Below, piece by piece: positions 24,833 through 42,373 of a stretch of 64,000 bases of DNA (its first letter is position 1; every line of letters begins with the position of its first letter). The translations under genes and the position numbers were made by a program. Below the pieces are notes generated by a model. That model was not told the DNA's origin. It made no database searches and saw only the letters and a list, made by a program, of their open reading frames with translations. The stretch covers positions 1,178,001 to 1,242,000 of the forward strand of contig OZ251241.1 of assembly GCA_965240325.2 (NCBI GenBank), given 5' to 3'. This stretch comes from Rebecca billardiae RCC1528. Its lineage: Eukaryota > Protista > Haptophyta.

Positions 24833-26487
24833 TCAGCGACGCGCATCCGAGAACAGATCATGAGATCAGCAGTCATCAGACCGGTCACGGTGACGAATGT
24901 CTAGCAGTGTCAGTGATCATAGGGTCGTCCTCATCACTGGGATTCGTAATGGCAATGCGGCGGCGGTCTATCTGGCGGCCTTATTATAACGTGAGTAGCA
25001 GTCTTATCAGCAGCATATACCTCTGCTGCTCGATCTGCTGCTACAGCTTGCTGACTCTGACGCCTGCCCGTTGCATACCACGTCGTTAATATAATATATA
25101 TATTGTCTGAGTCAGATCAACCCCCGACATCGACTCTCACCGCTGCGCTATTTACTCTGAGGCACAGTGACTCTCTAGCTACAGCACTGCTGTATCATTG
25201 TATATAGATAGCGACAGTCACGGCGCTTACGTATTCGCAGTTCGCACCAAGAAACCCTTTGAATGACAAGCTCACCTCGAGACGTACTTTGGTCTGTTTT
25301 GACTTTTGTGGCGGTGTCTTTGTGCAGTGTTGGATGGCGTCAATCACGCCTTGGCTCCGGTCACTGTCCGGGACGTCCAGCAGGGGTGCATTCAGACTCT
25401 CTGGGGGGGTCTGGGGGGGGCTCCCCCCAGCCGATCGAAGGACCAAATACGCCTCAATAAGGCCCCAACTCGCCAGAATTCGCATAGCAGACCGTGTTCG
25501 CTGGTGTTGGCTGAGGGCTGCGTCGTGCGGCGTCGGCTCTGCGCCGGGCGGCCATGACGCATTGCACACAGCCCCAATATCGGCGCCTCCCTCGCGAGTC
25601 AAGACGTAGCGTAGTGCAGGATCGAGCAACGCATTGACCGCTGCGGCGCACCGCGCAGGCCACGCCGCACCTTAGCACTCGCGAACAAGCTCTGAGCCAG
25701 CCAGCTGTGGCAGTCCTCTGAGGAGCTGCAGCCAAGCACGAGCTCGTGCGCATACCCGTGGCACCACGAGCTGACGGCGCGGCCCGGGGCGCGAGCAGCT
25801 AGAAGCCGACAAGCTCATGCGCACGCCCGCACCGCCGCGAGATGTGGCCGCCGGCGCGAGCAGCTCGACGCGGAAAGCGCGCAGCTTGCTCGAGTCGACG
25901 AGCAGCTTCTCGCCCATCGGTGACTCTCAGTGCACGAAGGTGCACCCGGGGCGCGAGCGCGACAGGGTGCCGCGGCCAACCAGCGGATGCGCCCGGATCA
26001 AGGCCTCCAAGACGTCTCGTCTCCTCGCCCGCTCGGCGGCGCTCCATCGTGCGAGAGACCGGTCCGGGAGCCCAAAAAAAAGTTCAGCACGATGGAGTCC
26101 TCCGTGTTCGACTGTGACGACGCGTTCAAGGACAAGGAAACATACGAAATCGTCTGCGGCTTCGGTTTTGAACCTGCGGCTTCGTCCGCCGCCCCGGAGA
26201 CCTTTCGATTGGTACCCTCATCGCTCCCTGGCTCCCAGGGGTTCGTCTAAATGCACCCCCCCCATAGGGTCAGTGGACGTCCCTGACTGTGGCTGGAGCC
26301 CCTTACAGTTTAGGCGCAGGCAGGTGAGGGGCGCGTTGCCGCACCTCGTCGAGGCGGCCATTGCAGCAAGCGGCCGCCCCGCGCTCGGAGGCACGCGCTC
26401 GGGAGCGCGCTCTGACACCACACGGGGAGGGTGCTGCACCTGGATGTTGTATCCCAGCCCAGTAACCAAGTGTGCACGTTAAAACAT

Positions 26488-27157
26488 GGGAAAAGTTCAG
26501 AACCCCGCCGATTCGCGGCGGCTTGTGCAGAATCCCGCCAAATCGGCCAGAACCTCGCGAGGGGCTTTTCCGGACGCGATGTCCCCCAGAAGTCCGATTG
26601 TCGAACATTCGGGCAAGCCACGCGCACGAAGATACCGAACCCCGCGATTGCGCCGAAACGGCGCAATCGCGTCTTTTGACGTCGCCGATTACGCGCAGTA
26701 CCCGCGAAATGAACCCCGCCGGCGAAACACTTAATCAAACACGGGGTTCGCGTCGTTTCGACGCCCTCGCGTGCTGTTTCGGCCGCGGGGCCCCTCGCGG
26801 CTCTTCGGAGCCCGCAAAAAAGCCCCGAAGAGCCCCCATCGCCCCCACGCGCGCACCTCGCGCGAACGAGGTGCGCGCGCGCGCCCGACGCGCGCGCGCG
26901 CGCGCGCGTCGGGCTGCGGGCGGGGGGAGCGGGGGAGGCGCGCGATGCCGCCGCCTGCGCGCGCGCCGCCTCACGCGCGCGTGGCCTCCCGGCGCGCGCG
27001 CACGCGCTCTGTCCGCGTGCGCCTCCGTTGGTTTGCATAATGTGCACGCCCGCCTCCTGGCGAACTCGCGCGCGACGGCCGTGTGGCGCGCGCGCGCGCA
27101 GGCGGAGCTGGTTCGTGCGGCGTTACGCGCAAGCTACGTGCACAACATGCCGCCGCC
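26488..27157 (+). repeat. Left TIR of MULE (670 bp)
   Basis: Reverse complement of 41692..42361; the translations in the ORF track (26472+ and 41298-) are identical across it. Confidence 0.95.
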
Positions 27158-30100
27158 GCAGTCGATGCGGCCGCAGTCCAAAGAGGACTACTTCGCAGTC
27201 AAGTCGAACGTGCTCGTGCAGCGTGCGTCTGCTGATGGTGAGGGCATTCCAGCCACTGTCTTGTCGTGCGAGATCAAAGCAGTCCCCACGCGCGACGGCA
27301 AGCATCGCGCTTCTTACACGTACATCGTCGGGCCGCTACCCGACGTTGACGCGGAACAGTGGGCGCTCGCAGCTGGTACGATTCTATACCCCCAGATGGC
27401 AGCGAGTCAAAGGCGGGTGACGCCAGAGCAGCTCACGAAGCTGCCGCTCGCGACGGGCGTTGGCGCATCTGTGGCCACGCCCGGCGCGTCGCCGCAGCGG
27501 GCGGCGGCGCCGCAGCCCGGTTCGCAGGCGCCGTCACGCACGAGCGCACGACTTGCTAATGCAGGTGGCGGCGTCGCCGCTGGCGGCGGTGCTGGCAGTG
27601 GTGCAGCCCAGGGTGGCGGCGCAGGCGTGCGCAGCGGCCTGCGCGCAACGGAGACGTGCTGCGACGCCGCCGCCGCCACCACCGGTCGCGGCACCGGTGG
27701 TGCCGCCGGTGTCGCCACCGCCGGCTGCGGCGGTGGCGACACCGGCCGCTGCGACCCTGCCACCACTACATCCAAGGGGGGGAACCGTCGTGTCGGCGGC
27801 GGTGGCCGCCTCGCCGGCACCGCTGCTGCCGGCGCCGCCACCGTCACCGCCGCTGCCGCCACCGCCGCTGCCGCTGGCGGCAGCGGCGGTGACGGTGGCG
27901 GCGCCGGCAGCAGCGGTGTCGGCGGCGGTGGCCGCCCCGCCGGCAGCAGCGGTGTCGGCGGCGGTGGCCGCCCTGCCGGCACCGGTGGCCGCCCCGCCTG
28001 CAGCAGCGGTGCCGGCGGGGCGGCCACCGCGGCCGACACCGCTGCTGCCGCCGCCGCCGCCGCCGCCACCGGCGCCGGCGCCGGCGCCGGCGCCGCCGCG
28101 AGCGGTGGCGCCACCGTCCCCGCAGTCCCCCCCGCCGCCAGCGATGGGGCAGGCGGCGGCGGCGGCAGCGGCGGTGGGATCGGCGGCGGCGGCGGCGGCA
28201 GCGGCGGCGGCGGCAGCGGCGGTGTTCCTGGCGGCGGCGGCGGCGGCAGCAGCGCCGCTGCCGCCGCCGCCGCCGCTGACGCCGCCGGCGATGCCGGCGG
28301 CGTCACTACGGAGGAGATGATGGCGCGCGTGAGCCAGCACCTCACGCCGCCGCGCGCCGCCGCCGGTTCTACCTCTGTCTTGCGCGGTGCCGCGAAGCGG
28401 CAGTCGGTGCCGGCGCCGTCGCCACTCCCGTCGCCACTCGCCGTCTTCGTCACTCCGACCGCTTTGCACGCGTTCGACACGCGCGGATCCTCGGCGTTCA
28501 CGCAGCAGCCTCCTGTCGCGCGTCTGAAGCCGTCGCTCATGATCTTCATGGACAAGCACAGCGCGCAGCTGGGCGACGGGGCGCGGACAATAACGTCCCA
28601 AAACGCGGTCGGCCTGACTTCACGCACGGCGGTGGTCCGCCGTTACCACGCCGTGCTCACGTCGGTGGAGAGCGTGCGCGAACTCACCGAAGCCGGCGCC
28701 CTCCTGCCGGCCGCCGCCGTCGCGGCTGCGGTGCGCGCATCTTTCAGCGCCTGCTCCCCGCCGACACCACCGGCGCCGGGAGGCGCAGGTGCCGCGGACG
28801 CGGCCGCTGCCCTGCGCGCTGCGCGCGCTCACTTCGTGGAGTGCGCTGAGGAGGCTGAGGGGCGCCAGCTGTTGCCCTTGCCGTACGCCCCCGGCCCGCA
28901 CCTGGCCGTCACTGCGCCCCTGCCCGGCGCAGAGCGCCCGGCGGTCGTGCCGCGCGCGCAGCGCACATCGGCTGGGGGCAAGCCGCTGGCGCTCTTGTGG
29001 ACCGCAGCTGAGCACGCGGCGCTGGGCATCCCCGCCGACCTCGCCAACGTCCCGCGTGTGTGGCCCGCGCTGGTGCCCAAACCGGCGGCGTGCGGCGCGG
29101 CGCCGACGCCCTCGTCGGAACCCGCCGCGGCGTCGCCTCCGCTGCTGCTGCACGCCGTGGTGGCAGTGCGCGCTCGCCCGCGCGCTCGCCCGGCGCCGCA
29201 TGCCGGCGGCGATGGCGCCGACGCCAGCGATGGCGCAGCGGCGCGCCCGTCCGCGGAGGCGACGCTGCAGATGGCGTACGCCGTCCGGGACACGGACGGG
29301 TGGCGCGTGCTGCAGCAAGCCGAACTCGTCACCTCCTTGACGGCCGAGGTGACGCACTACGCGGACGCCGACTTCGGCACTGCCGTGAGCAGAGGCGACA
29401 TCGTCGCCGTGCAGCTGGCGTCCATGGCGCCGCCACCGCCGGATGAGCCCGCGTGCGCACGCGCGGCTGCGGGCGGCGCCGGCGGCGGCCCAGCCAGCCG
29501 CACTAGCGGCGCGCCGGTGCTCGACGCTGAGGACGAGGTGGCCAAAATCCCGTCGGGGATGCTCGCGGCGCCCGACATTCTGCTCACGGCGCAGGGCTGG
29601 ACGGCCCTCACCGGCGTCGCCGCTCCCACTACGTGGACGGACGCGGGCGCACCCAAGTCGCACCTGCAGCACGCTGCGTACATCGCAGAGGGCGTGCTCG
29701 CGTTCCTGGGGAGTCTCCGCGCGCACGCGCCCGATGCGCTGCCGCAGCTGTACCGCACGCCCGCCTCTGGCGACCTGCTGGATGTGCTGCGTGTGGTGTG
29801 TCTCGCCGGGAGGCCGCCCGAGTGCGCGCTCGAGGGCACGCCGATCGAACCCTGGCTCGATCTCGCTGAGCGCATGGGCACGTCCTTCGACTTCTCGCGC
29901 TTCGCCGGAAGCGACTCAGGCGACACCCTCGCGGCACTCGCGTGCCACGCGGAGGCTCTGAAACGCCGTGGGGCCGGGGCGACGTGCCTGGCAGCGGCGA
30001 TCGCGTGCGCCACGGTGCTGACGCAGCGCGTCTCCCTCCCTCACTTGCGCTACGACGCGCTGGCAGACGTCTACCAAACCTTGCGCGGGGACGAGTACTC

Positions 30101-31247
30101 GTTCCTCACCAAGGTCCGCGTCGCGCGCGCGCGCTTCGTGCTCCCGCCCCCCGACGGCGCCGACGGCGCGCGCGCCGACGCGACGTCGGGGGGCACCGCC
30201 AAGCAGCAGCAGAAGCAGTCCGCTGCGCCGTCAGCCGACGCGCGCATCCCGTACTTCGAGATCCAGGCAGTGTCCGAGGACTGCATCGCCCTGTACAACC
30301 AGGTGGAGGGGGCTGATGCGGGGTCGCAGTGGGCGCCCAACCCGGCGGACTTGCTCTCCTTCATGTTCGTGCCCGGAAACACGCACTCGTGGAGGTATGA
30401 GGAGATGAGAAACCGCAAGTCACAGAAGCGCACGCGCGGCGTGCCGAAGCCCGCGGGCAACTTCTGCACGCTCTTCTTCACAGTGTGCACGTACCCGCCC
30501 ATGCAGGGAGCTGGCGCGCCGCCCCCCACGGAGCGTGGCCTGAGGGACGAGACTGCCTCCATCACCGACTTCCGCGGGCTGTGCTTCACCATCATGCAGG
30601 ACGAGAAGCCGAGGGGCAATGACGTGCTGTGGACGCACCCGGCTGCCCCCGTGCAGTCCCGCGCTGCGGGCGGCGCCGAGGCGCCGAACGGCGCCGACGC
30701 GCCCAAGATGTACGCGGGGCGCCTGGACGTGCCGTGGCACCCCCCCGCGCCCGCGGACGCGCCCGCGGCTGCCGCCGCCACCGGAGCGCGCAAGCGGCGC
30801 GCTTCCACGCAACGGGCTGCCGCGCCCCCGGATGCCGCGACCACCCGCCCGCCCACCACGCGCGCGCCCGCCCGGGGCGCCGCGCCGGCCGGGGGGAAAG
30901 TCGCCAGACGTGGCGCTGCCCAGCCGCGCGCCTCGCAAGCCGACGTGCCCACCATCAACCTCGACGAGCACGGGCGCGGCGACGACGAGGTCGTCGAGGC
31001 TGTCGCGGCGCGCCTGTCGCGGATGATCGAACCCGTCGCGGCGCGCCTCGACGGCCTCGACGAGCGCACCGCCGGCATCGAAGAGCGCACCGCCGGCATC
31101 GAAGAGCGCACCGCAGCGGGCCAGCGCGAATTGGCCGTCATGCGCGCGCGGCAAGACGATCTCACACGCATGCTGGCACAGACCGGCACTGTCCTTGAGC
31201 GCTTGGTGGCAAGGACCGAGCCGCGCGAGGGCGCGAGCCGGCGCTGA
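27147..31247 (+). CDS. MULE accessory protein (~1,366 aa): N-terminal Tudor/SH3-like segment, Gly/Ala-rich linker, unknown globular regions, C-terminal coiled coil
   Basis: Uninterrupted ORF from the TIR-embedded ATG (MPPPQSM). FAVKSNVLVQR..IPATVLS..YTYIV..RRVTPEQLTKL resembles an SH3-barrel pattern; heptad repeat ERTAGIE near the C-terminus. An upstream start via TIR intron 26871..27101 is possible. Confidence 0.7.
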   Translation: MPPPQSMRPQSKEDYFAVKSNVLVQRASADGEGIPATVLSCEIKAVPTRDGKHRASYTYIVGPLPDVDAEQWALAAGTILYPQMAASQRRVTPEQLTKLPLATGVGASVATPGASPQRAAAPQPGSQAPSRTSARLANAGGGVAAGGGAGSGAAQGGGAGVRSGLRATETCCDAAAATTGRGTGGAAGVATAGCGGGDTGRCDPATTTSKGGNRRVGGGGRLAGTAAAGAATVTAAAATAAAAGGSGGDGGGAGSSGVGGGGRPAGSSGVGGGGRPAGTGGRPACSSGAGGAATAADTAAAAAAAAATGAGAGAGAAASGGATVPAVPPAASDGAGGGGGSGGGIGGGGGGSGGGGSGGVPGGGGGGSSAAAAAAAADAAGDAGGVTTEEMMARVSQHLTPPRAAAGSTSVLRGAAKRQSVPAPSPLPSPLAVFVTPTALHAFDTRGSSAFTQQPPVARLKPSLMIFMDKHSAQLGDGARTITSQNAVGLTSRTAVVRRYHAVLTSVESVRELTEAGALLPAAAVAAAVRASFSACSPPTPPAPGGAGAADAAAALRAARAHFVECAEEAEGRQLLPLPYAPGPHLAVTAPLPGAERPAVVPRAQRTSAGGKPLALLWTAAEHAALGIPADLANVPRVWPALVPKPAACGAAPTPSSEPAAASPPLLLHAVVAVRARPRARPAPHAGGDGADASDGAAARPSAEATLQMAYAVRDTDGWRVLQQAELVTSLTAEVTHYADADFGTAVSRGDIVAVQLASMAPPPPDEPACARAAAGGAGGGPASRTSGAPVLDAEDEVAKIPSGMLAAPDILLTAQGWTALTGVAAPTTWTDAGAPKSHLQHAAYIAEGVLAFLGSLRAHAPDALPQLYRTPASGDLLDVLRVVCLAGRPPECALEGTPIEPWLDLAERMGTSFDFSRFAGSDSGDTLAALACHAEALKRRGAGATCLAAAIACATVLTQRVSLPHLRYDALADVYQTLRGDEYSFLTKVRVARARFVLPPPDGADGARADATSGGTAKQQQKQSAAPSADARIPYFEIQAVSEDCIALYNQVEGADAGSQWAPNPADLLSFMFVPGNTHSWRYEEMRNRKSQKRTRGVPKPAGNFCTLFFTVCTYPPMQGAGAPPPTERGLRDETASITDFRGLCFTIMQDEKPRGNDVLWTHPAAPVQSRAAGGAEAPNGADAPKMYAGRLDVPWHPPAPADAPAAAAATGARKRRASTQRAAAPPDAATTRPPTTRAPARGAAPAGGKVARRGAAQPRASQADVPTINLDEHGRGDDEVVEAVAARLSRMIEPVAARLDGLDERTAGIEERTAGIEERTAAGQRELAVMRARQDDLTRMLAQTGTVLERLVARTEPREGASRR

Positions 31248-32044
31248 CCGTGCGAGCGACCGCTGGGCGGAGGCGGTGCGCCGAACGCACGTCGGCTGCG
31301 GTGCTGCCGAGGGCGCACACCGCCGCCAGCAGTGCGCCGCCGCCGTCGCTGCTCACGCGCTGGGCGCACGCGCCCGGGCCGGTGGGGCGGCGCGGCGGCG
31401 GCGTGCGCGCGCACCGCGCGCCCGGCCAGTGCGCGACACCGTGTCGCACTTACCCGTGCCCATCCATACTGGTGCGCGCCGCGCGACGGGCTTGCGCGTC
31501 TCCGGTGCGCGCGGCACCACGCCCGTGCACACCGCCTGACCCCCCGTTGCTCACCGGTGCCTGCGCGCCGACCCGGTGCACCGTCTGACTGCGCGCGCAT
31601 GCGCATGCGCAGTGACCTTGCCCTTGCCGTATTCCGCCATGCAGTTGCACCCGCAGTCCTTGGCCGACGGTGCTCAATCGGCCGGCTTCGTCCGAGTGCG
31701 CGTCGTCCGCACAGACAGTGCTTCCCGCCGCGAGTTGGCGTGTCACCTTCAGTGTCACCTGCCTAAGTAGGAGTACACAGCCGCTGGTGCCGCCGATGCG
31801 GAGCACCCTTATCACACAGCTCCCCGTGCCGTCTGAGCCTGAGGCAGCCCTGCACTTGTCCGCGGGCGACTCAGCCCCCGACCATCTGAAGCGGCACGAA
31901 TTATTCACCGAGCCCCCATCTATGCACCCATCGACATGCAGTCCCAGTCACGCACATCCCACATCTCTTCCCCCGCACGTGCCCAACTCCCCGTAACGTG
32001 CCCGTCTCCCACTGCGGGGCACGGACGCCACTTCATCCGCCAAT

Positions 32045-35000
32045 CTACTCGCCACTGCCGCCGTCGGCGCCCGCGGGCGCGTGCGCAGACGCGCGCCGGG
32101 CGCGCTCCCGCGACAAGCGCGCGAGCAAACGAGTGGCTGAGTGCTCCTCGTACCCGTCAAGGCGGGAGTCCAGTGCCGGCTGCGCGAGGACACGGTCGTC
32201 GTCCGCGCTGTCGTAGTCCATGGGCTCGCCTTCCGCGGGGTCCTCGGGGCCGGCGGGCGAGTGCAATGAGAACACCCGCGTGTTGAAGCGCCGCGTGGCG
32301 CCACGGTAGCGAGTGAGCCCGACCTCGTCCACGCGCGAGAGCAGCATGCGGTCGGCCATGTGTGGCGCCAGCGTGGGCTGATACTCCGACGCCCCGTTGT
32401 GGGTCTCGTCGTCCTCCACGAGCGCACGCCAGCGTGCACGCGCCTTCGCGCAGTGACGCTCCGCGCACGCCGCCACGTACGGCCAGCGCCCTTCGCCGCC
32501 CGCGGAGAGCGCGCGCGCGGCCGGCGCGGCGTCCGCGCCGGTATCCACCACCGCGTGGAAGTGCCCTGGGTGGTACACGACGGCCACCCAGTCAGTGCCC
32601 ATGGTGCCGAGGTCGAGCCTGCGCAACGCGTGCACGTCCTCCTTCTTCGTCAGGTCGAAGCTCCCCTCGGAGAAGCACCTCCGGCGTGTGGTGCTGTCCG
32701 CCGCCGCATCGCGCGCTCGCTTGGGCGCCCGCCACAACGACACCCGCGGGAACAGGTTCACCTTGTCTGCGTCCATACGATCGCCGCGCGCGGTGAACGC
32801 CAGGACGTGCACACCCAGCGCACGCGACGCGCTGCCCTGCGTCTGCGAGCCTGGCGTCCACTCGCCACCGCGGCGGAATTCCTCCCAGGCCGAGTCGTAG
32901 TCCGCGCCGCCACGGTACAAACGCGCGGCGTACCGCAGGCTGGTCCGGTTCGTGCCCGCCCATCGGCCCTCGAGCTCCATGTCCTGGCCCGTGCCGCGCT
33001 TGCGCAGCTCGTCGGCGCGCACGGCCAGGACGCCGGCGAGCTCACGCTCCGCAAGCTCGCCGTCCATGGGCTGCCCATCCCACATCGTCGGCCCGCACTC
33101 GTTGGGGCCGGTCGGGTGGAAGAACGACGCCATGTAGGACACCGTCGCGGAGCGCGCGCGCTTGGCGCGCACGTTCATGCGCTGCATAAGCGCGTTGCGC
33201 GCCGCGCGCGTGGGGGCCGCCGCGAGGGCGGCCGAATCGTGCGCAAGGATAGCGTGGAAGAAGCAGTCCCCGTCGCCGGGCACGTCCACCTCGCGCACCG
33301 TCGGGCCGAACAACGTCTTCAGCACGTAGGCCACGGTCGGGGCCCTGGACCCACCCCGACCGTCCCCGGCGAGCGACCACAATGGCAAGCCGGTGGCAGA
33401 CGTCGCCAGCAATGGCGCCTCACGCGCGCGCGCGCGGCTCGCGTCCCACCGCGCGAGTGGGAGGCCGAGCTCGGGCATGAGCTGGGCTGCGGCCGACGGC
33501 GGCTCGTGCGCGGCGGTGCCAGGCAACCCAGAGCCTTCGTCCGCCCCGGCCGGACCCGCCTCCGAGCGCCCCGGCCGCGCGCGCGCTGCGAACTGGGCGA
33601 TGATCTTGTCGGGAATGCTTCTGGCGGTCTTCCAGGCGGTGCGCAGTGTGTTGTCCAACGACGTGTGCGCGGGCGCCCGCTCGCGCGCACGCATGAAACG
33701 GTTGGCCGACGCCTCGCCCACGCCGGCGGCGCTCGTGACCACCCTCCTGACCGCGACGTGGCGGTCGCCGAGAGCGGCGTATGCCGCCTCAGCCTCCGCC
33801 ATGACGTTCGCCGCGCCGGGCGCTGGCGGGGCCACCCCTGGCGTGCCCGCGCAGGGGGGAGGGCCTGCACCGTCGCCGTCATCCGCGGGCGCCGTTGGCA
33901 CGGCACCCGGCGGTGGCACTGCACCGCCGCGCGCGTGAGCTGCGTCGGTGCCCGCGCCCGCCCCCGTCGAGGTGCGTGGCGGCGCGCCACGCGACGCCGG
34001 CGGCGCTGCGCCGAAGCGCACTGACGGGCCCGGTGGAGCCTGGGCCGCGTACGCCCGCGCGCTGTGTGGCTTCTTGCGCGGTTTGCGCGGCTGGCGGGCG
34101 GGCTTCGCGGGCGCATCACCCGCGCCGGCGGAGGCGTCAGGTGTGCGCGAGCCACCTGGCGCGCCAGAGGCGCGCGCGCCCCCGCCGCCGCACGCACCGT
34201 CGCCGCCGCCAGCGCGCGCACGGGGCGCGCCGGGCCCGCGCGCGTACGCCGCCTCCTGCGGCCTGGCACCCGTAGGCGGCGCCGCAGCCGGCGCGCCTTC
34301 CTCCTCGGCACGCCACGCGCGCAGCTTCTTCCACGCGCCGGCGACAAGGAGGAAGTAGCAGCACGTGCACATGTACAGCCCACTGTCCATCGGACCCAGA
34401 TGCCACACGTACTCGCATTGCGCGGGTGCGTGGATGAAGCACGCGCACCCCTGGCACGTTAGCCTGGGGTCCACCGGGGGCGCGCTGGCCGGCCACGCAG
34501 CGCCGAGGTCGTCGGCTTGCGGGTCGTAGCACGCGCAGCAGCGCAGCAGGGCCGCCGTCCTCGCGTCGAACGTGGACCAGGCGCGCAGCCGCTGGTTGAA
34601 CGTCTGAGGCGCGGCCACGGTCCCGCCCACGCGCACGTTGACGTTGCGCGTGCAGAGCACGTCCTGGAGCGCGATGCCGTACAGGTGCGACGGGAGTTCA
34701 CTGAGCACCTGCTCGAGCGTCGAGTTCGCCGCTTCGCGCACGCGCGCGGCGAAGCCGCCGTCGGCGGTCAAGGGCCGCACGTACGTTTGCGTCGAGCGCC
34801 CGATGGGCACTGAGTCGTACTCGGAGCGCGAGTGCGGCGCGCGGCGGGCGCGGCCTCCGCGCGGCCCTCGCTCCCAGAAGCTGGGCGCGCGGTCCGCGTT
34901 CGCCGGCCTGCCCGCGCGCGCGGGCATCGCCGGCACGGCGACGTACTCCGCCAAGAGCGATTGCAACTGCTGTGACGGTAGCAGAAGGGGCTGCACAGCG

Positions 35001-38000
35001 TCCTCGAGGCGCCGCGGCGGCGTGATGACGTCCAGCTTCGTGATGGACAGCACTGCGCCCGTCGGGGCTTGCGTGACGCCGAGCCCGACCTGCGCGTACC
35101 AAGTGGCGCTGCGCATGTCCTCGGGGAGGAGCGAGCACACCGGCTCGTTCACGCGGTTGCACACGAGGCAGAAGTGCAAGCACGGCAGGCGCTTGCGGCG
35201 AAGCAGCCCGCAGCACAGGAAGTTGTCGAGGTGCACAAAGCGCTCTTTGGACTGGTCCGTGGTGCTCAGCACGCGGTAGCAACCGGCGTGCTCGCCGTCG
35301 GCGACGAGGTTGCACTCGGCGCCGCCCATGGCGCGCGCGTCCTGCACTGCGCCGCGCACGTACGGCACGTGCCGCGGTGGCAGCCCGTGCAGGTCGCGAT
35401 CGGGGTCGGGGTTGAGGGCGTGGCGCACGGCCACGGCGCGGTGCGTGGCGAAGAGGCGGTAGAGGTTGTCGTGCAGGTCGAGCAGCATCCACACCGGGCC
35501 CTGCGACTTGCGCACAGGGAGCAGCCACTTCATGAACGACTCCGCGGGCGCGCCTGTGACGTAGCCGCGCATCCACACCGGCGCGAAGACAGGGAAGAGC
35601 TCGGCGCGCGGGATGAGATCGATGATGCGCTTGCCCGACTCGGGCATCTCCGCCCAGGCCCGGTCGAAGTCCTCGACGTACAACGCCTGGACGCACCGGT
35701 CGAAGACCTCCAGGATCTTGTTGACGTCGTTCGCCGTGTGCGCGTACCCCGTGATGAAGTTGTCCCGCTTGTGGAAGGTGCACAGGAACAGGTGCCTGCG
35801 GGGGCAGAGGAGCTTCCACGCGCCGCGCAGGCCCTTCTGCCCGTCGGAGATGGTGACGGAGTCGTCGACGTTCCACACGTCGTCACCGCCCAGCTCCTGC
35901 TTCAAGTAGCGCACGTGCGCGCACCACGAGTCTAGGCACTCGACGTCGACGATGTACGACACACAGAGCACGAACAGCTGCCCGTTGGCGTTCACTGCGA
36001 GCGTCACAAAGAGCATGCCTGTGACGCGCGCAGGTGGCACCGGCGGAGAAGGCCGGGGTGCGGGTGAATGTGCGTGCCAGGGCGGGTGTGCATGTGTGTG
36101 TGTGCGTGGGTGTGCGGCCTGCAGGACACGGAAGGGGGGAAGGGGGGAAGGGGGGGGGGTGGGGGTGGGGGGCGCACACCGGCACGCTTGCCACCGCCGC
36201 TCGCCGGCCTGTGCAGGTGGCACGCGTCGCTGAACACGGCGCGGTTGCCCTTGGCCAGGAAGTGCTCACGGTAGAGCTGCTTGGCCTGCTTGGGCACGTA
36301 GTGGAAGCCACCGACGGCCTTCTTCCCGCGCACCTCGTCAATGGCGCGCTTCACCGAGGGCTCCTCCGGGTCGAAGGGCCGCCTGGCGCCGAGCGGCACC
36401 GAGCGCTGGGCGCTGTCGTGCACACGGCGGAACATCGCGAGCACGTCGCTGTGCACTGTGTCCGCGGCGAAGACGATCGGCGCGACCGCGTTGCCCTCCG
36501 CCGAGAGCCCGGCGGTCACTGCCACCAGGTCGCGCGACATGGCGCTGTCGTCGCCGTAAATCTGCTCGCGCGCGACGGCGAGCGCCCTGCGCACGAGGCT
36601 CTCACCCACCTTCTCCGGGACGAGCGCGCGCGCGACGGCCTTGCTCTCCGTGACGCCGTACGCCAACTGCGCGTGCGTGGCGCCGCGCTCGCGCAAGCGC
36701 GCCCGCCAGTCGTGCTCGACTGCCTTGCCCAACTGCTTGGCGGAGTAGGGCCACACGCGCACTCGCGCCTTGGTCCGCGACCGACTCGGCGAGGTGACTG
36801 GGTTCGCGCGCGAGCCGGCGCCGCCGGCGTTGTTGTAACAGTCCGGGCTGTGTGCGGAGGATGCCTCCACGTACCACGCCGGTCGGCCCCACACGGCGTG
36901 ATCCGGCGCGGGGCCCACCTGCACACGGAACGCGCAGTTCGGCGTGGTGCACGTCACCCTCAGCTTGGAATGGTCCAGTTGGGCGGACGGCGGCATGATC
37001 CGCCGGTGCACGGCGCACTCCGCTGCGAGGGTGATGGCGTCCGCGAGGCGCTCGAAGCGCGTGCCGGGTCGCACGAGTGTGTCGCTCGCCAACGAGGAGT
37101 CACGGACCACCTCCGTGTGCGGGCGTGGCGGCCTCGAGCCCAACACCTTCCAGCCTTCCACGGGCGCGAGCGCATGGTGCTGCCCCGCTCTGGACTGCTT
37201 GGGCAGTGGGTGGTACTCGGCATCTCCGCCGTGGTGCTGTGGCAAGGGCTGGCCCTGCGCGCCTGCCGCGGCGCTTGCGCCTGGGACGGCCGTGCGCGTG
37301 GCGGGCGTAGGCTGCGCGCACGCGCCGGACGGGGGGCACGTCACAAGCGCCGCGAGCGGGTCGTGCGCAGTTGACGCACCGGCTGCGCCAGCGTGGGCGG
37401 AGCCCTCCCGAGCGTCGTCGGACACATCGTCGCGGTCGCCGCTGGGACAGAAGCGCGCGCTCTCGTCCTCACAGAGCATGAGTGGGTCGGTGGCCTCCCA
37501 CTCGTCGATCCGCGCGAGCGCGGCACTGCCGGCGTCCGGCTGCGAGATGACACCACTCACGGCCCCCGCGCCATCCTCGCTGAGGAGGAGCGTCTGCCAG
37601 TCCGCGCTCAGGACGAAAAGGGGTGCGTTGCCGCTCGCAGCTGCACGCGTGTGCGCCGAGCGACTGCGGCCGAGGTCCTGCACAACAGTGCCCACTGCCT
37701 TCGCAGCCTGCCGTTGTTCGTCGGTCGCCGTCGCCGCGTGAAAGTGGCCTCCGACATGAGCGGCCTGGCCGGGTCGGAATGCCAGCCTGAGCTCGTGTGG
37801 CGCCAAGTGCAGGGTACCATGTGGTGGCCGCGGCAGCGGCATGTCCGCGTTGTCCGTGCCAGGCCCACCGACGGCGCGAGCCTGGACGTTCGAGGCCAAA
37901 ACGCCCGCGAGCGCGCTCGGTCCGGCGCCGTCGACGCGCTCCTCGCCCAGGCGCACGGCGTTGCCGAGCACGCTCTGCGTCGGCGCGGCCGTGCAATGCG

Positions 38001-41000
38001 CAACCGCGGCGGCAGTGCCACCGGCGCCATGCGCGCCAGTCGCCTCGCCGCCGTCTGGCACATCGGCGCTGCCGGGGGACCCTTCGCGCAGCACGCGCGC
38101 ATTGGCGTGCGGACCACCTCCGCCGCCGCCGCCGCCGTCACAGCCCGTGGACGCCGGCGCGCCATGCACCGCCACGACGACACACGGGCTCGTGCAGGCG
38201 GCGGAGGCGTCCGCCTGCGTGCACAACAGCGGCGCCCGCGCAGCGGGAGGGGGGGCAGGCCAGGGGCAGACGGGTGGCGAGCTGCTGATGGCCCCCGGAG
38301 GACGTGGGCCGGCGTCGGCGCCTGGCGCGCGGCCGTCCACGCCGCGCGGCGTCGGTGTCCCCGGCCCTGCACGGACAGGGCCCGTGCCGTGCGACGTGTC
38401 GCGCTGCCCGTGCGGGCCCGCAGGTGGCGAGCGGGCTGCAGCTGTCAGCGACGCGTCGCCGTTGTCAGCACCGGGGAGCGCGAGCAGAAGCGCCGAGTGC
38501 GCCCATTGGCGCTGCGCGCGTTCTGGCGGCACATGCACGCACTGCGTCACGCCGCGCAAGAGCTCCTCGGGATCGGCCGTCGGCGCGTCGCCCAGCGCGT
38601 GTTGGACGCAGTCGGCCACGTACTGCTGGTGCTGGGGCGAGCCCATGTTGAATGCGGGGAATGCGCCCTGCGCGTCGCCAGGCGCGCCAGCGCGCAGCTT
38701 CCGGCTGTACAGGTGCCGCAAGCCCGATTCGAGCGTGAGGACGAAGCGATGGGGCGTGAGCGGCGCAGGCGCAGAGACGAGAGCTGCAGGCGAGGCTGCC
38801 GGCGCGGCCAGCACCATCGGGCTGCGGTGGCGGCCCGCCGCGCGCAGCGCGGCGGCGAGTTCGGGCGACCCGAACAAGAACACAGCCTTGATGACATCGC
38901 CGTCGAGAGTGTGCGCGCGCCGCGGCTTTTTCCCCGACATGTCGCTGTGCGCAGGGGCGGTCCCGCCCCGCGGCGCCTGCGCCGAGCGGTGGTACAGCAT
39001 GGACGGGAAGATGTGCACGGTGCCTGCCACGTCGCCGCCCTCCACGTCGCCGCCATGCAGCGGAGCGGCGACGGGGTGTCCGTCCGGGCCCGCGTCCAGG
39101 AGCTCGAGCGGGTAGGGGTTCCCCCCGTGAGGTGCGACGGCACGTGCACGACGAGCACGGCCGTCCAGACGTGGGGGTCGTGCACCATGTCGCTGTCCAC
39201 GTGCCAGCCGTATGTGGTGGCCTCGCCCGCTGCGGTCTGGCCATCGCTGGTTGCGCCCGCGTGCGCGTCCGCAGGCGACGGGCGCGCGAAGACGTGCCAC
39301 GCAGTGAGAACGGGGCTGGAGTGCTCCACGTCGAACACCGCCTCCATGAAGGCCTGCAGTGTAGTCACCACGTCCGCGAATGGTGGGCAGTCCAGCACCG
39401 CTGTCGGCGTGCCCGCCTCGGCGCCATGGTCGCCCACCCCCCAGCGGCGCTGCTCGGCGGCGACGCCGGCGGCATCGGCGGAGTGATAGGCGAGTGCAGT
39501 GCGGATGAGGGCATGGTCCGCAGCGTGGAGGGGCATGGAGGCGTCGCCCGCCTAACCTGGCGTGGACAAAGACGTAGTCGCGCAACGCCTGCACAGCGTG
39601 TGGTGGTATGCGAACGCTGTGGGCAGTGGCCGCAGCGTCGCCGAAGGCTCGGCGAAGCGCGTGCTGGACCGCCAAGTTGTGCACGAGCATGTCGCACAGG
39701 CTCAGGGACGACGCGGGGGTGTTCGGCGGGGCTTGGCGCGGTGGCGGTGCGCGCAGGGCCGGTGAGGGGTCCTGCGGCACCCCCGGCGGGCGAGGGCACC
39801 CCGCCGAAAGAGCGCCTGACACCGCGCTCACGGCTTCTCCGGACACGCGCGCGGCGGCGCCGGCGACGGCGTGCGCGCCGACCAGAGTCACCACCAGCGT
39901 CACCGGCGGCATCGCCACCGCTGCATCGGCCACCAAGGCTTCGGCGAACGTCGCGTCGAGGAACGGGTGCAGACGTGCGCCCACGCCGACGTGCACCAGT
40001 GCGGGCGTGAGCGGGATGACGACAGCCCACACAGTGCGACGCTCGAGGACGGAGATCGCGTGCAGCAACGGCCGCGCCAGCCAGCCCTCGCACAGCGCAC
40101 GCCCTTCGCACGCGTCGAGAAAGGCCGTCAGCCCAGCGCGGCCGTCGTCGCCGACGTCAGACACGGACGCGCGCAGCGCCCGCGCGGCAGCGACCCGCCG
40201 GTCGCAGTCTGCACCGTCTGCATCGTCGTGGACTGCGTGGCCGGCCGCACGGCGGCACTCGGCGTCAGCGCGCAGCGCTTGGTCCACAGCGCGCAACCAC
40301 GTGGCGCGCGCGCGCAGCAGTTCCCGCCAGAGCAGATCCGCCCGTTGGCCCGCCTGCACCGACGAAGACGTCTCCATGTAGAGCGCGTGGTCCGCAAGCG
40401 GCGGCGCGGGGGCCAGCGCCCCACGTAAGCTCGTGTACGCACGGGTACGCAGGTGGTCTGCCGCGTGCGCGTCGGACACGCCGGGGGCTGACGCCGACGC
40501 CACGCGCACAAAGGCGGCGAAGAGGTCTTCGCGGCATCCGGCGTCGGCGCCGAACACCGCGCGCGCGTAGTATTCCACGGCCGGCGCCGGCTTAGCCCCT
40601 GTGCCACCCGCTCGCGCATCCACAGTCGAGAACACGCCGTGTATGTCCCCCGCGTCCGGGCGGGGCGCGCACAGCGCAGCGAGCGCCACCTTCACCTGCA
40701 GAGGCGAGCTCGCCCATGCCGCACGCACCGCGATGGCAGCAGGGGCGCGAGGCAACGGCGGCGGCGACCCCTGCCGCCGCCGTTGCGCCGGCACACCCCA
40801 GCCCACAGAGCCCCCCCCCGAGTCCGAGGTCGGGTCGTGACCTAGCAACCCACCGCCGGCAGCGCCTCCGGCAGCGGCGCCGTGCGCATCGCCAGGCGGG
40901 GGCGACGACACCGGGTCACACCCAGCTGGGCACAGCGAGGTGGGCACCGGCAAGTGCTCGGCGCCGGGAGCGCCGGCGCAGCCGGCGCCATGCATCGCCG

Positions 41001-41702
41001 CAAACGCCAGGGCGCGGAACCACAGGGCAGCAGACGACAGCCTAGACAGCCTGTCGCAAGAGCCGCCCATGTCGCCGCCCAGGTCCAGTACAGCCTCGGC
41101 TGAGGCCAGCACACCGACGCACTCGGTGAAGCAGAGAAGCGCCTCCGCACTCGCCAGATCCGACACCACCGGCGGCACGCAGCCGGTGCCACCAACACGA
41201 CCACCAGCCTGGGCGGCGCTCACCGAGCCCAGCACGCACAGCACGAGGACCAAGCTGAACTCCCACGGGGTGTTCTGTGGAGTCATCCGCAGAGCATTCA
41301 GCGCGCTCTCCGCTCCGCTGACGAACTCGTCAATCCGCAACGCGCGCACAGTGGTGCCGTCGACGCGCCTGGGCTGCACCACGTCAGATGACGCCTCCGC
41401 CTGCGCGCGACAGATGCACGGTGCGCAACGGATGCACGATGGCGGGCAAAAGGGGCGGGGGGGGGGGGGGTGGGGGTGGGGGGCGCGGGGTGCGACGTTG
41501 GAGGCACCGGCACGCACGTCGGTGCAGGCAGTACCCTCTGCCAGCCGCCCGCGCGCAGCACCGCCACCCAGCCGCGCGCACCATCGTCCTTGCGTGCGCA
41601 GCAGTTCCGTCGTACAACCACCAAAGCGGGCAAAGGGCGACACCTGCGCGCGCGTCCGGAGGCCACGCGCGCGTGAGGCGGCGCGCGCGCAGGCGGCGGC
41701 AT
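32045..41702 (-). CDS. Giant MULE transposase polyprotein (~3,100 aa predicted): 2OG-Fe(II) dioxygenase, MuDR zinc-finger DBD, DDE, SWIM, PHD, HhH, OTU; exons 41702..41535, 41400..36180, 36018..32045
   Basis: DBD RVTCTTPNCAFRV..WYV..HSPDC. DDE: VFSDACHL..G|MLFVTLAVNANGQLF, TISDGQKGL, LCTFH, TGAPAESF. SWIM CCGL..LPCLH; PHD C4HC3; OTU VPGDGDCFFHAI..HFHAV. Introns 41401..41534 (phase 0) and 36019..36179 (phase 1) have GT..AG and restore frame. Core transposase is firm; the 5' exon model is less so. Confidence 0.85.
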
Positions 41703-42361
41703 GTTGTGCACGTAGCTTGCGCGTAACGCCGCACGAACCAGCTCCGCCTGCGCGCGCGCGCGCCACACGGCCGTCGCGCGCGAGTTCGCCAGGAGGCGGG
41801 CGTGCACATTATGCAAACCAACGGAGGCGCACGCGGACAGAGCGCGTGCGCGCGCGCCGGGAGGCCACGCGCGCGTGAGGCGGCGCGCGCGCAGGCGGCG
41901 GCATCGCGCGCCTCCCCCGCTCCCCCCGCCCGCAGCCCGACGCGCGCGCGCGCGCGCGCGTCGGGCGCGCGCGCGCACCTCGTTCGCGCGAGGTGCGCGC
42001 GTGGGGGCGATGGGGGCTCTTCGGGGCTTTTTTGCGGGCTCCGAAGAGCCGCGAGGGGCCCCGCGGCCGAAACAGCACGCGAGGGCGTCGAAACGACGCG
42101 AACCCCGTGTTTGATTAAGTGTTTCGCCGGCGGGGTTCATTTCGCGGGTACTGCGCGTAATCGGCGACGTCAAAAGACGCGATTGCGCCGTTTCGGCGCA
42201 ATCGCGGGGTTCGGTATCTTCGTGCGCGTGGCTTGCCCGAATGTTCGACAATCGGACTTCTGGGGGACATCGCGTCCGGAAAAGCCCCTCGCGAGGTTCT
42301 GGCCGATTTGGCGGGATTCTGCACAAGCCGCCGCGAATCGGCGGGGTTCTGAACTTTTCCC
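41692..42361 (-). repeat. Right TIR of MULE (670 bp)
   Basis: Reverse complement of 26488..27157. Confidence 0.95.
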
Positions 42362-42373
42362 TTAAAACATCTA

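Follow-up and report, generated by a model that had tools for sequence, protein, structure and literature searches.

We analyzed a 64,000-nucleotide (nt) stretch of the genome of the haptophyte Rebecca billardiae RCC1528 (contig OZ251241.1, positions 1,178,001 to 1,242,000; hereafter "the window") and found that it contains a recently inserted, 15.9-kb DNA transposon of the Mutator superfamily. The reading we favor, with moderate confidence, is that this Mutator-like element (MULE) encodes a giant transposase with a divergent but complete catalytic core, an OTU-like protease, and a probable 2OG-Fe(II) oxygenase that is broken in this copy. A previous examination of the stretch (the sequence-only reading) had described the element as a Mutator transposon equipped with a series of chromatin-related domains, and about half of the domains on that list stand.

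A repeat search of the whole window recovered the 670-nt terminal inverted repeats that had been reported for this element, and the two arms proved to be 100% complementary (Table 1). The same 9-bp sequence, TTAAAACAT, flanks the element on both sides as a target site duplication, and agreement at 9/9 positions has a chance probability of about 4e-6. Because the repeat arms are identical and the duplication is intact, the insertion must be recent, as had been proposed, and this giant MULE has probably been active recently. The insertion site shows no codon periodicity and is therefore non-coding DNA, so that the element resides in non-coding DNA near a gene. An exon-like signal of a host gene, seen in third-position G+C (GC3), is located at about 25740-25950, approximately 550-750 nt upstream of the insertion site. 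The G+C content of the window is 58-78%, and that of the element is about 70-76%. Searches with blastn and tblastn revealed no other copy or relative elsewhere in the 64,000-nt window.

The element carries two convergent long open reading frames (ORFs), the MuDR-like layout that the sequence-only reading had recognized in this large Mutator-superfamily element. One ATG (ATGCCGCCGCC) offers a possible start to both ORFs, as it is found among the innermost 11 bases of the two repeat arms (plus strand, 27147; minus strand, 41702). Since long ORFs are common in DNA with high G+C, coding was tested in two ways: by stop counts and by GC3 periodicity. The plus-strand frame (27147-31247) has 0 stops in 1,366 codons, where the remaining five frames have 7-32. 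For the minus strand, the counts are 0 stops in 1,931 codons for frame m1 (41799-36007; off-frames, 15 and 20) and 0 in 1,323 codons for frame m0 (36018-32048; off-frames, 10 and 13). Open frames this long are expected by chance with a probability of <1e-5 at the off-frame stop density. Furthermore, third-position G+C reaches 0.85-1.0 in exactly the long open frames of both strands. Stop counts and periodicity thus agree on the two convergent genes that had been called.

The minus-strand gene is predicted to encode the transposase from three exons. Its change from frame m1 to frame m0 is accounted for by an intron at 36179..36019, and this predicted intron is well supported because the spliced product aligns with an intron-less relative (P0009/L005) with one single-residue gap and because an exon boundary falls at the corresponding residue in the metagenomic relatives L003/L004. 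The first intron (41534..41401) and the 5' end of the gene are putative, since exon 1 has no clear coding signal and the choice is among about 30 GT-AG pairs. Consequently, of the two splice junctions given in the sequence-only reading, 36179/36019 is supported by relatives, whereas 41534/41401 is one of about 30 options that keep the frame. With both introns, the predicted coding sequence is 9,360 nt (about 3,118 codons), in line with the transposase of about 3,100 amino acids (aa) that had been suggested. Two further observations concern this gene model. Putative exon 1 begins with 58 nt (41645-41702) that match a segment within the repeat arm (26945-27002) at 97%, and for this reason the ATGCCGCCGCC start motif occurs twice per arm. 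Intron 36019-36179 has a word depth of about 90,000 in sequencing run X1, which comes from unrelated repeats.

Table 1. Features of the Mutator element in the window (positions are those of the window; m0, m1, and m2 are the reading frames of the minus strand)
Feature	Position	Strand	Basis
Left target site duplication, 9 bp, TTAAAACAT	26479..26487		direct reading; same as 42362-42370
Left terminal inverted repeat, 670 bp; ATG (27147) of plus-strand gene in inner end	26488..27157	+	repeat search
Second gene, 1,366 codons	27147..31247	+	stop counts, GC3
Last exon (stop 32045-32047): second half of DDE, SWIM-like finger, Cys/His finger, disordered linker, OTU-like domain	32045..36018	-	GC3, ORF, alignment
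OTU-like cysteine protease (predicted); Cys box DVPGDGDCFFH (Cys codon 33263-33265), His box GHFH (~32555-32563)	32540..33300	-	PDB phmmer, atlas, motifs
Clade-specific Cys/His (C4HC3-like) zinc module, previously called PHD; last-exon residues 561-622	34355..34543	-	conserved in relatives
SWIM-like CxC...CxH finger	35150..35215	-	aligned with SWIM fingers of two relatives that pass Pfam SWIM, P0015 and P0019
DDE core: D 36226-36228, D 35843-35845, CxxH motif, E 35540-35542; split by intron	35540..36228	-	MAFFT with 19 relatives
Intron, 161 nt, GT..AG, with C-rich tract and CA-rich repeat	36019..36179	-	m1 to m0 frame change, splice enumeration, relatives
Large middle exon: N-terminal region, oxygenase-like domain, long linker, WRKY/GCM1-type finger, first D of DDE	36180..41400	-	open frame, GC3
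N-terminal CX4C...HX3C finger of MULE (WRKY-GCM1) type, with insert	36830..37075	-	aligned with CX4C...HxC fingers of P0012, P0015, P0017, and P0019
2OG-Fe(II) oxygenase-like domain, PiuC/P4H type (probable); HxD block with His 39201-39203 and Asp 39195-39197 (m2), distal His 38989-38991 (m1)	38890..39551	-	GC3, atlas, profile
Downstream frame change, m2 to m1, at a G6 run short of one base	39121..39126	-	three-frame reading; X1 contig carries extra base
Upstream frame change, m1 to m2, G-rich run, one base too many	39543..39551	-	three-frame reading; outside read coverage
Putative first intron, 134 nt	41401..41534	-	one of ~30 GT-AG pairs that keep frame
Putative first exon, ATG in inner end of right arm; weak coding signal	41535..41702	-	sequence reading
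Right terminal inverted repeat, 670 bp	41692..42361	-	repeat search
Right target site duplication, 9 bp, TTAAAACAT	42362..42370		direct reading

Relatives of the transposase were sought by an exhaustive HMMER search of 1.84 billion representatives (E <=0.001) with a 1,200-residue query that starts in the DDE core's second half and extends to the OTU part. Only 20 proteins were recovered, which indicates that this MULE clade is poorly sampled. A word-index search for homologues of the DDE part was blank, the relatives being shorter than the length band that it covers. One of them is an identical C-terminal stretch of 585 aa from a Logan assembly, and the other 19 match the core only. These core relatives match the MULE, Transposase_mut, and SWIM profiles of Pfam, with several reaching or approaching those profiles. 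In a MAFFT alignment, a finger of the WRKY/GCM1 type described for MULEs (PMC1702500), both Asp residues, the CxxH motif, the Glu, and the SWIM-like CxC...CxH finger are all in register. We also conducted Pfam scans of the three long ORFs and of eight in-frame pieces, in which the MULE profile (PF10551) gave 17.1 bits (E 0.0077), below the gathering cut-off of 27.6. The assignment to MULEs therefore depends on the chain of relatives, because this member is too divergent for the Pfam profile. Given the aligned core, the 9-bp duplication, and the long repeat arms, the element belongs to a sparsely sampled clade within the Mutator superfamily, and the encoded transposase appears to have a divergent but catalytically complete MULE core set within a much longer protein. 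The MULE DDE domain, N-terminal zinc finger, and SWIM finger named in the sequence-only reading are thus partly upheld by alignment with relatives, although Pfam itself yields only the sub-threshold MULE match.

Because the contigs of the relatives show the core alone, the long architecture is seen in this genome only. This distribution, together with the frequent capture of host DNA by MULEs (PMC6431247), would suit a Pack-MULE-like carrier, in which the N- and C-terminal extras are captured fragments of host genes that have no function in the transposase. We regard this as very unlikely: the extras share one uninterrupted open frame with the core (0 stops in 3,254 codons) and have the same GC3 bias, and the element has its own complete DDE core. 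Copy-specific captured DNA (Pack-MULE) had been raised as a way in which the sequence-only reading could fail. A Pack-MULE in the usual sense has captured fragments and no transposase, and the presence of that core speaks against it.

Two of the matching Logan contigs provide additional information. On a contig with 68% G+C, an intron-less core relative (L005; 1-591, 602-2296) adjoins a gene for the U1-70K small nuclear ribonucleoprotein, and from this setting we conclude that relatives occur in other GC-rich eukaryotes. Another contig from a different run (L001) corresponds to window positions 34160-31085, which take in the 3' portion of the transposase gene together with the spacer between the genes, and differs from the window by two substitutions only (33857 and 31676) in 3,076 nt.

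The C-terminal region very probably forms an OTU-like protease, whose activity is a prediction. When the last 485 residues were compared with all PDB sequences using phmmer (E <=10), the three matches obtained were all OTU proteins: two OTU domains of nairovirus L proteins (E 0.019 and 0.021) and EschOTU (E 0.28). The Cys box is identical to that of the nairovirus OTU at 11 of 15 residues. Likewise, a language-model atlas places the region next to OTU clusters, and the expected elements occur in order, namely the Cys box (D-G-x-C), a central W..E..A..hydrophobic block, and the GHFH His box. The OTU domain of the sequence-only reading is therefore probable, given these PDB matches and ordered motifs, even though the Pfam OTU profile (PF02338) was not reached on the in-frame pieces. 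No second OTU-like unit, as in a tandem arrangement, was found in the C-terminal region.

Between the core and the OTU-like domain is a Cys/His module that had been called a PHD finger. Its pattern is C-x2-C...C-x2-C-x4-H-x4-C...C-x2-C, with H-x4-C instead of the H-x2-C of PHD fingers, and every Cys/His position is kept in the relatives P0002, P0005, and P0006. No PHD finger was matched in Pfam or PDB at E values up to 10. The label PHD in its strict sense is thus replaced by that of a conserved, clade-specific zinc module that is possibly PHD-like. Beyond this module the relatives soon end, two of them with a CCHC knuckle. The HhH-like domain that had also been listed in this part of the protein has no Pfam match on the in-frame pieces and was not retained.

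The oxygenase-like domain upstream of the core is distributed over two reading frames. GC3 periodicity switches from m1 to m2 between about 39550 and 39100-39000, exactly over the half of the domain that contains the HxD motif. Y-G-W-H-V-D appears in the m2 reading, and, just downstream, m1 reads G-x-V-H-I-F-P...L-Y-H-R-S. With the frame restored, 67 residues separate the HxD motif from the distal His, which is followed 8 residues later by an Arg. Read in this way, the stretch has the HxD...H iron triad at its customary spacing together with a basic residue beyond the distal His. In the language-model atlas, the HxD half adjoins the PF13640, OGFOD2-like, and DUF6445 clusters (all of one clan), and the distal half gives only noise.

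To score the domain as a whole, we built a custom profile from 16 annotated 2OG-Fe(II) oxygenases of cyanophages and pelagiphages plus YbiX and applied it to the region read through with X at the two frame breaks. HMMER aligned two colinear blocks, with profile positions 90-105 corresponding to HxD and positions 144-160 to the distal His block, for a full score of 5.3 bits (E 7.7e-4 with one target). None of 3,000 shuffled sequences reached this score (maximum 2.6), and the m1 translation as assembled scored 1.1. In sliding windows along both element proteins (4,480 residues), scores of >2 bits occurred only in windows over the oxygenase region. A comparison of the distal block using hhalign gave a P value of 1.5e-4 and a probability of 51%.

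The alternative that this stretch is a chance HxD...H motif in a low-complexity, GC-rich coding region must be weighed against these results. When searched separately, the two halves have no recognizable family in Pfam, NCBIfam, PHROGs, or PDB sequences; the sole PHROGs/NCBIfam match is one unannotated PHROG to the HxD half at E 0.28. A word-index search for homologues of the HxD half was blank, and tblastn against phages gave noise. A homologue search with Escherichia coli YbiX returned only matches that are at least 80% identical, and a profile built from YbiX only matched the HxD block alone. These blanks, along with the noisy distal half in the atlas, are what a chance motif would produce. 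However, such a motif would not readily account for two colinear blocks at the right profile positions, a score that no shuffle reached and that occurs nowhere else in the two proteins, the hhalign P value, or atlas features of the proximal half that fall in one clan. We therefore judge a chance motif to be unlikely and consider that the domain is probably a 2OG-Fe(II) oxygenase of the PiuC/prolyl-hydroxylase type (PF13640-like). There is moderate evidence that it is not of the TET/JBP type, and the parallel with TET/JBP dioxygenases drawn in the sequence-only reading was accordingly overstated. The dioxygenase call itself receives moderate support from the profile, hhalign, and the atlas, but the HxD half lies outside the open frame in this copy.

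Two opposite 1-nt changes, 425 nt apart, put the oxygenase blocks in different frames, and the domain is thus not intact in this copy. Nevertheless, none of the 141 misread codons interrupts the long m1 frame; given the off-frame stop density, the chance of this is about 0.28. Because the HxD half is misread without closing the long frame, this copy as assembled would produce a transposase with a dead oxygenase. Introns were rejected as the cause of the frame changes, since the two readings abut within a few bases at the G-runs. Programmed frameshifting was also rejected, given that there is no evidence for it and that a variant with the restoring base exists. This variant was found when contigs of the independent run X1 were mapped onto positions 36000-41999, which gave a few 151-nt pieces at about 2x depth. 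Most of these match the window exactly, and the one that spans 39061-39210 has an additional base in the G-run (G7 rather than G6), which is the restoring change, plus A>G at 39130. Hence an in-frame version at 39121-39126 exists, and either it represents another copy or allele or the assembly is wrong at this site.

The second of these options leads to a competing explanation, in which both frame changes are homopolymer assembly errors, so that the true element would have a single uninterrupted ORF and an undamaged oxygenase. Both changes do lie in G-runs, and the G7 contig comes from a data set whose other contigs are mostly identical to the window. Conversely, that same contig has a substitution 10 nt away, which points to a different copy or allele and not to this locus; the depth is 2 only, the upstream site lies outside read coverage, and there is no further frame break in 9.4 kb of coding sequence. 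We consider assembly error the most serious of the competing explanations, although we think a genuinely broken domain is the better account. The paired frame changes provide a natural handle on whether the oxygenase is needed.

Several points weigh against our overall reading of a recent Mutator element with a divergent complete core, an OTU-like protease, and a probable oxygenase that is broken in this copy. As just discussed, errors in the assembly could account for the frame changes. For the oxygenase, the score is low in absolute terms and comes from two short blocks, in a region that was picked after its motifs had been seen in the sequence-only reading. In Pfam, the transposase falls below the MULE threshold and is blank for OTU, 2OG oxygenase, PHD, and SWIM. 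Moreover, the sequences of the relatives stop a little way past the Cys/His finger, and their short contigs show no OTU or oxygenase domain. AlphaFold2 (AF2) models made without an alignment do not confirm a fold either for the part from the Cys/His module to the OTU-like domain (mean predicted local distance difference test [pLDDT] score 36.9) or for the second-gene protein (mean pLDDT 33.1, with N-terminal strands at about 45). Finally, the gene model and its start within the repeat arm are sequence-based predictions, and expression is presumed.

A working model for this element can be outlined. Each repeat arm probably serves as the promoter and 5' leader of an inward-facing gene that starts at the ATG in the inner end of the arm. 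The OTU domain could cut the giant precursor into working parts, remove ubiquitin-like modifiers during transposition and repair, or do both. The oxygenase, where intact, might hydroxylate a protein or nucleic-acid substrate, and the product of the second gene might act as an accessory factor. Viral OTU proteases are known to cut precursors in this way. Polyprotein processing by the OTU domain would be at least as likely as a role in anti-silencing or target choice. An anti-silencing role is speculation.

The sequence-only reading had favored such a role, proposing that the element carries a chromatin toolkit that reads histone marks, removes ubiquitin, and oxidizes methyl marks to counter host silencing or to choose targets. 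There is precedent in MULEs with anti-silencing genes (VANC; PMC5735166, PMC10398659), the OTU and oxygenase domains are probably present, and a conserved Cys/His finger follows the transposase core. Nevertheless, no histone-reading PHD or Tudor domain was found in Pfam, PDB sequences, or AF2 models, the oxygenase resembles PiuC/P4H enzymes rather than TET/JBP or JmjC enzymes, and it is out of frame in this recently moved copy. For these reasons, we view the toolkit as improbable. A bolder version of the idea is similarly doubtful: an algal or protist MULE lineage may have stably built a PiuC/P4H oxygenase and an OTU deubiquitinase into one giant transposase which, with its orphan partner, would modify chromatin or repair factors at the element's own copies for anti-silencing or target choice. 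If this were true, then the frame-preserving double frameshift would be a natural separation-of-function allele, and the oxygenase would be dispensable in cis for transposition.

Many features of the element are familiar from MuDR and other MULEs, including the 9-bp duplication, long terminal inverted repeats, a DDE core with CxxH, probable WRKY/GCM1-type and SWIM-like fingers, and two convergent genes. In maize MuDR, the convergent mudrA and mudrB genes are each driven from a repeat arm. In contrast to MuDR, the transposase ORF described here is about four times longer than MURA, and the 670-bp repeat arms contain start codons. The element also differs from MULEs in general by its divergence from the Pfam MULE profile and by a second gene that lacks similarity in the libraries searched.

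Protease modules at the C terminus are a known theme on transposases. MULE transposases of Medicago have an OTU-superfamily papain-like protease at the C terminus of a WRKY-finger transposase, for which polyprotein processing was proposed (PMC1702500, Babu et al. 2006). In our element, the probable OTU-type protease likewise lies at the C terminus of a MULE transposase with an apparent WRKY-type finger. By description, on which these systems were compared, the Medicago proteins differ in host lineage, whereas the R. billardiae protein has a long disordered linker and a clade-specific Cys/His finger ahead of the OTU domain, as well as an oxygenase-like domain. Ulp1 and PHD domains are found on Mutator transposases and OTU on Ginger1, where a deubiquitinase role was suggested (PMC2836005, Bao et al. 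2010), and PHD domains also occur in Rehavkus transposases (PMC6446971). The theme shared with our element is a protease (probable in our case) for ubiquitin-like modifiers, with or without a Cys/His finger, at the C terminus of a cut-and-paste transposase. Unlike in those systems, the Cys/His module here is not recognized as PHD, the protease is OTU-like and not Ulp1, and a probable oxygenase is present, which has not been reported for them.

Oxygenases also travel with other DNA transposons. Helitron-like elements (HLE2/Helentrons) carry OTU and 2OG-FeII_Oxy_2 domains (HELIANO, PMC11417382) and are eukaryotic DNA transposons that stably carry both kinds of domain. However, they use RepHel, and their oxygenase is AlkB-like (Oxy_2) and mostly encoded in separate ORFs, whereas the PiuC/P4H-like domain described here is part of the transposase ORF. 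Kyakuja-Dileera-Zisupton (KDZ) transposons reportedly carry TET/JBP dioxygenases, as described by Iyer and colleagues in 2014, and likewise pair a 2OG-Fe(II) dioxygenase with a cut-and-paste transposon. In that case both the transposase superfamily and the oxygenase family differ from ours, in which no TET/JBP features were found. VANDAL MULEs, which encode VANC anti-silencing proteins (PMC5735166, PMC10398659), resemble our element in having a gene beside the transposase and offer a precedent for anti-silencing encoded by the element itself. The second gene of our element has no similarity in the libraries searched.

Full-text literature searches yielded no MULE with a 2OG oxygenase, and a 2019 survey of MULE diversity does not list oxygenase or OTU domains. 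As far as searched, there appears to be no earlier report of the oxygenase fusion, of this size, or of the full combination. The claim of novelty in the sequence-only reading thus survives in part: OTU and PHD fusions on Mutator transposases were already published, but the oxygenase and the whole combination are unreported in the literature searched. If both domains are real and active, this would be the first Mutator element reported with both in its transposase, as far as searched. It would then parallel independent events in Helitron-like and KDZ elements, and would suggest that DNA transposons repeatedly need hydroxylase activities and those of the ubiquitin system. With its perfect ends and complete catalytic core, the element is also a candidate active transposon and a possible genetic tool in its host.

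The remaining observations concern regions for which the searches gave no family assignment. Upstream of the oxygenase on the minus strand (39553-41400) are about 600 residues that are Ala-rich but protein-like. This N-terminal region has no match in Pfam or PDB (616-aa query for PDB) and may be an unrecognized domain. The second gene is clearly coding, and its protein has no match in Pfam, PHROGs, NCBIfam, or PDB sequences. The sequence-only reading had viewed this protein as a Tudor-like partner of the transposase, which we do not retain, as no profile match to a Tudor domain was obtained in the same four libraries and the AF2 model is unusable. The protein opens with an N-terminal block of about 90 aa, followed by a Gly/Ala block encoded by GGC repeats (~27480-28300); the central coding block spans 28290-30750, and the C terminus carries a coiled-coil-like repeat. 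The GGC/GCC repeats that encode the Gly/Ala-rich stretch at 27480-28300 form dozens of imperfect palindromes.

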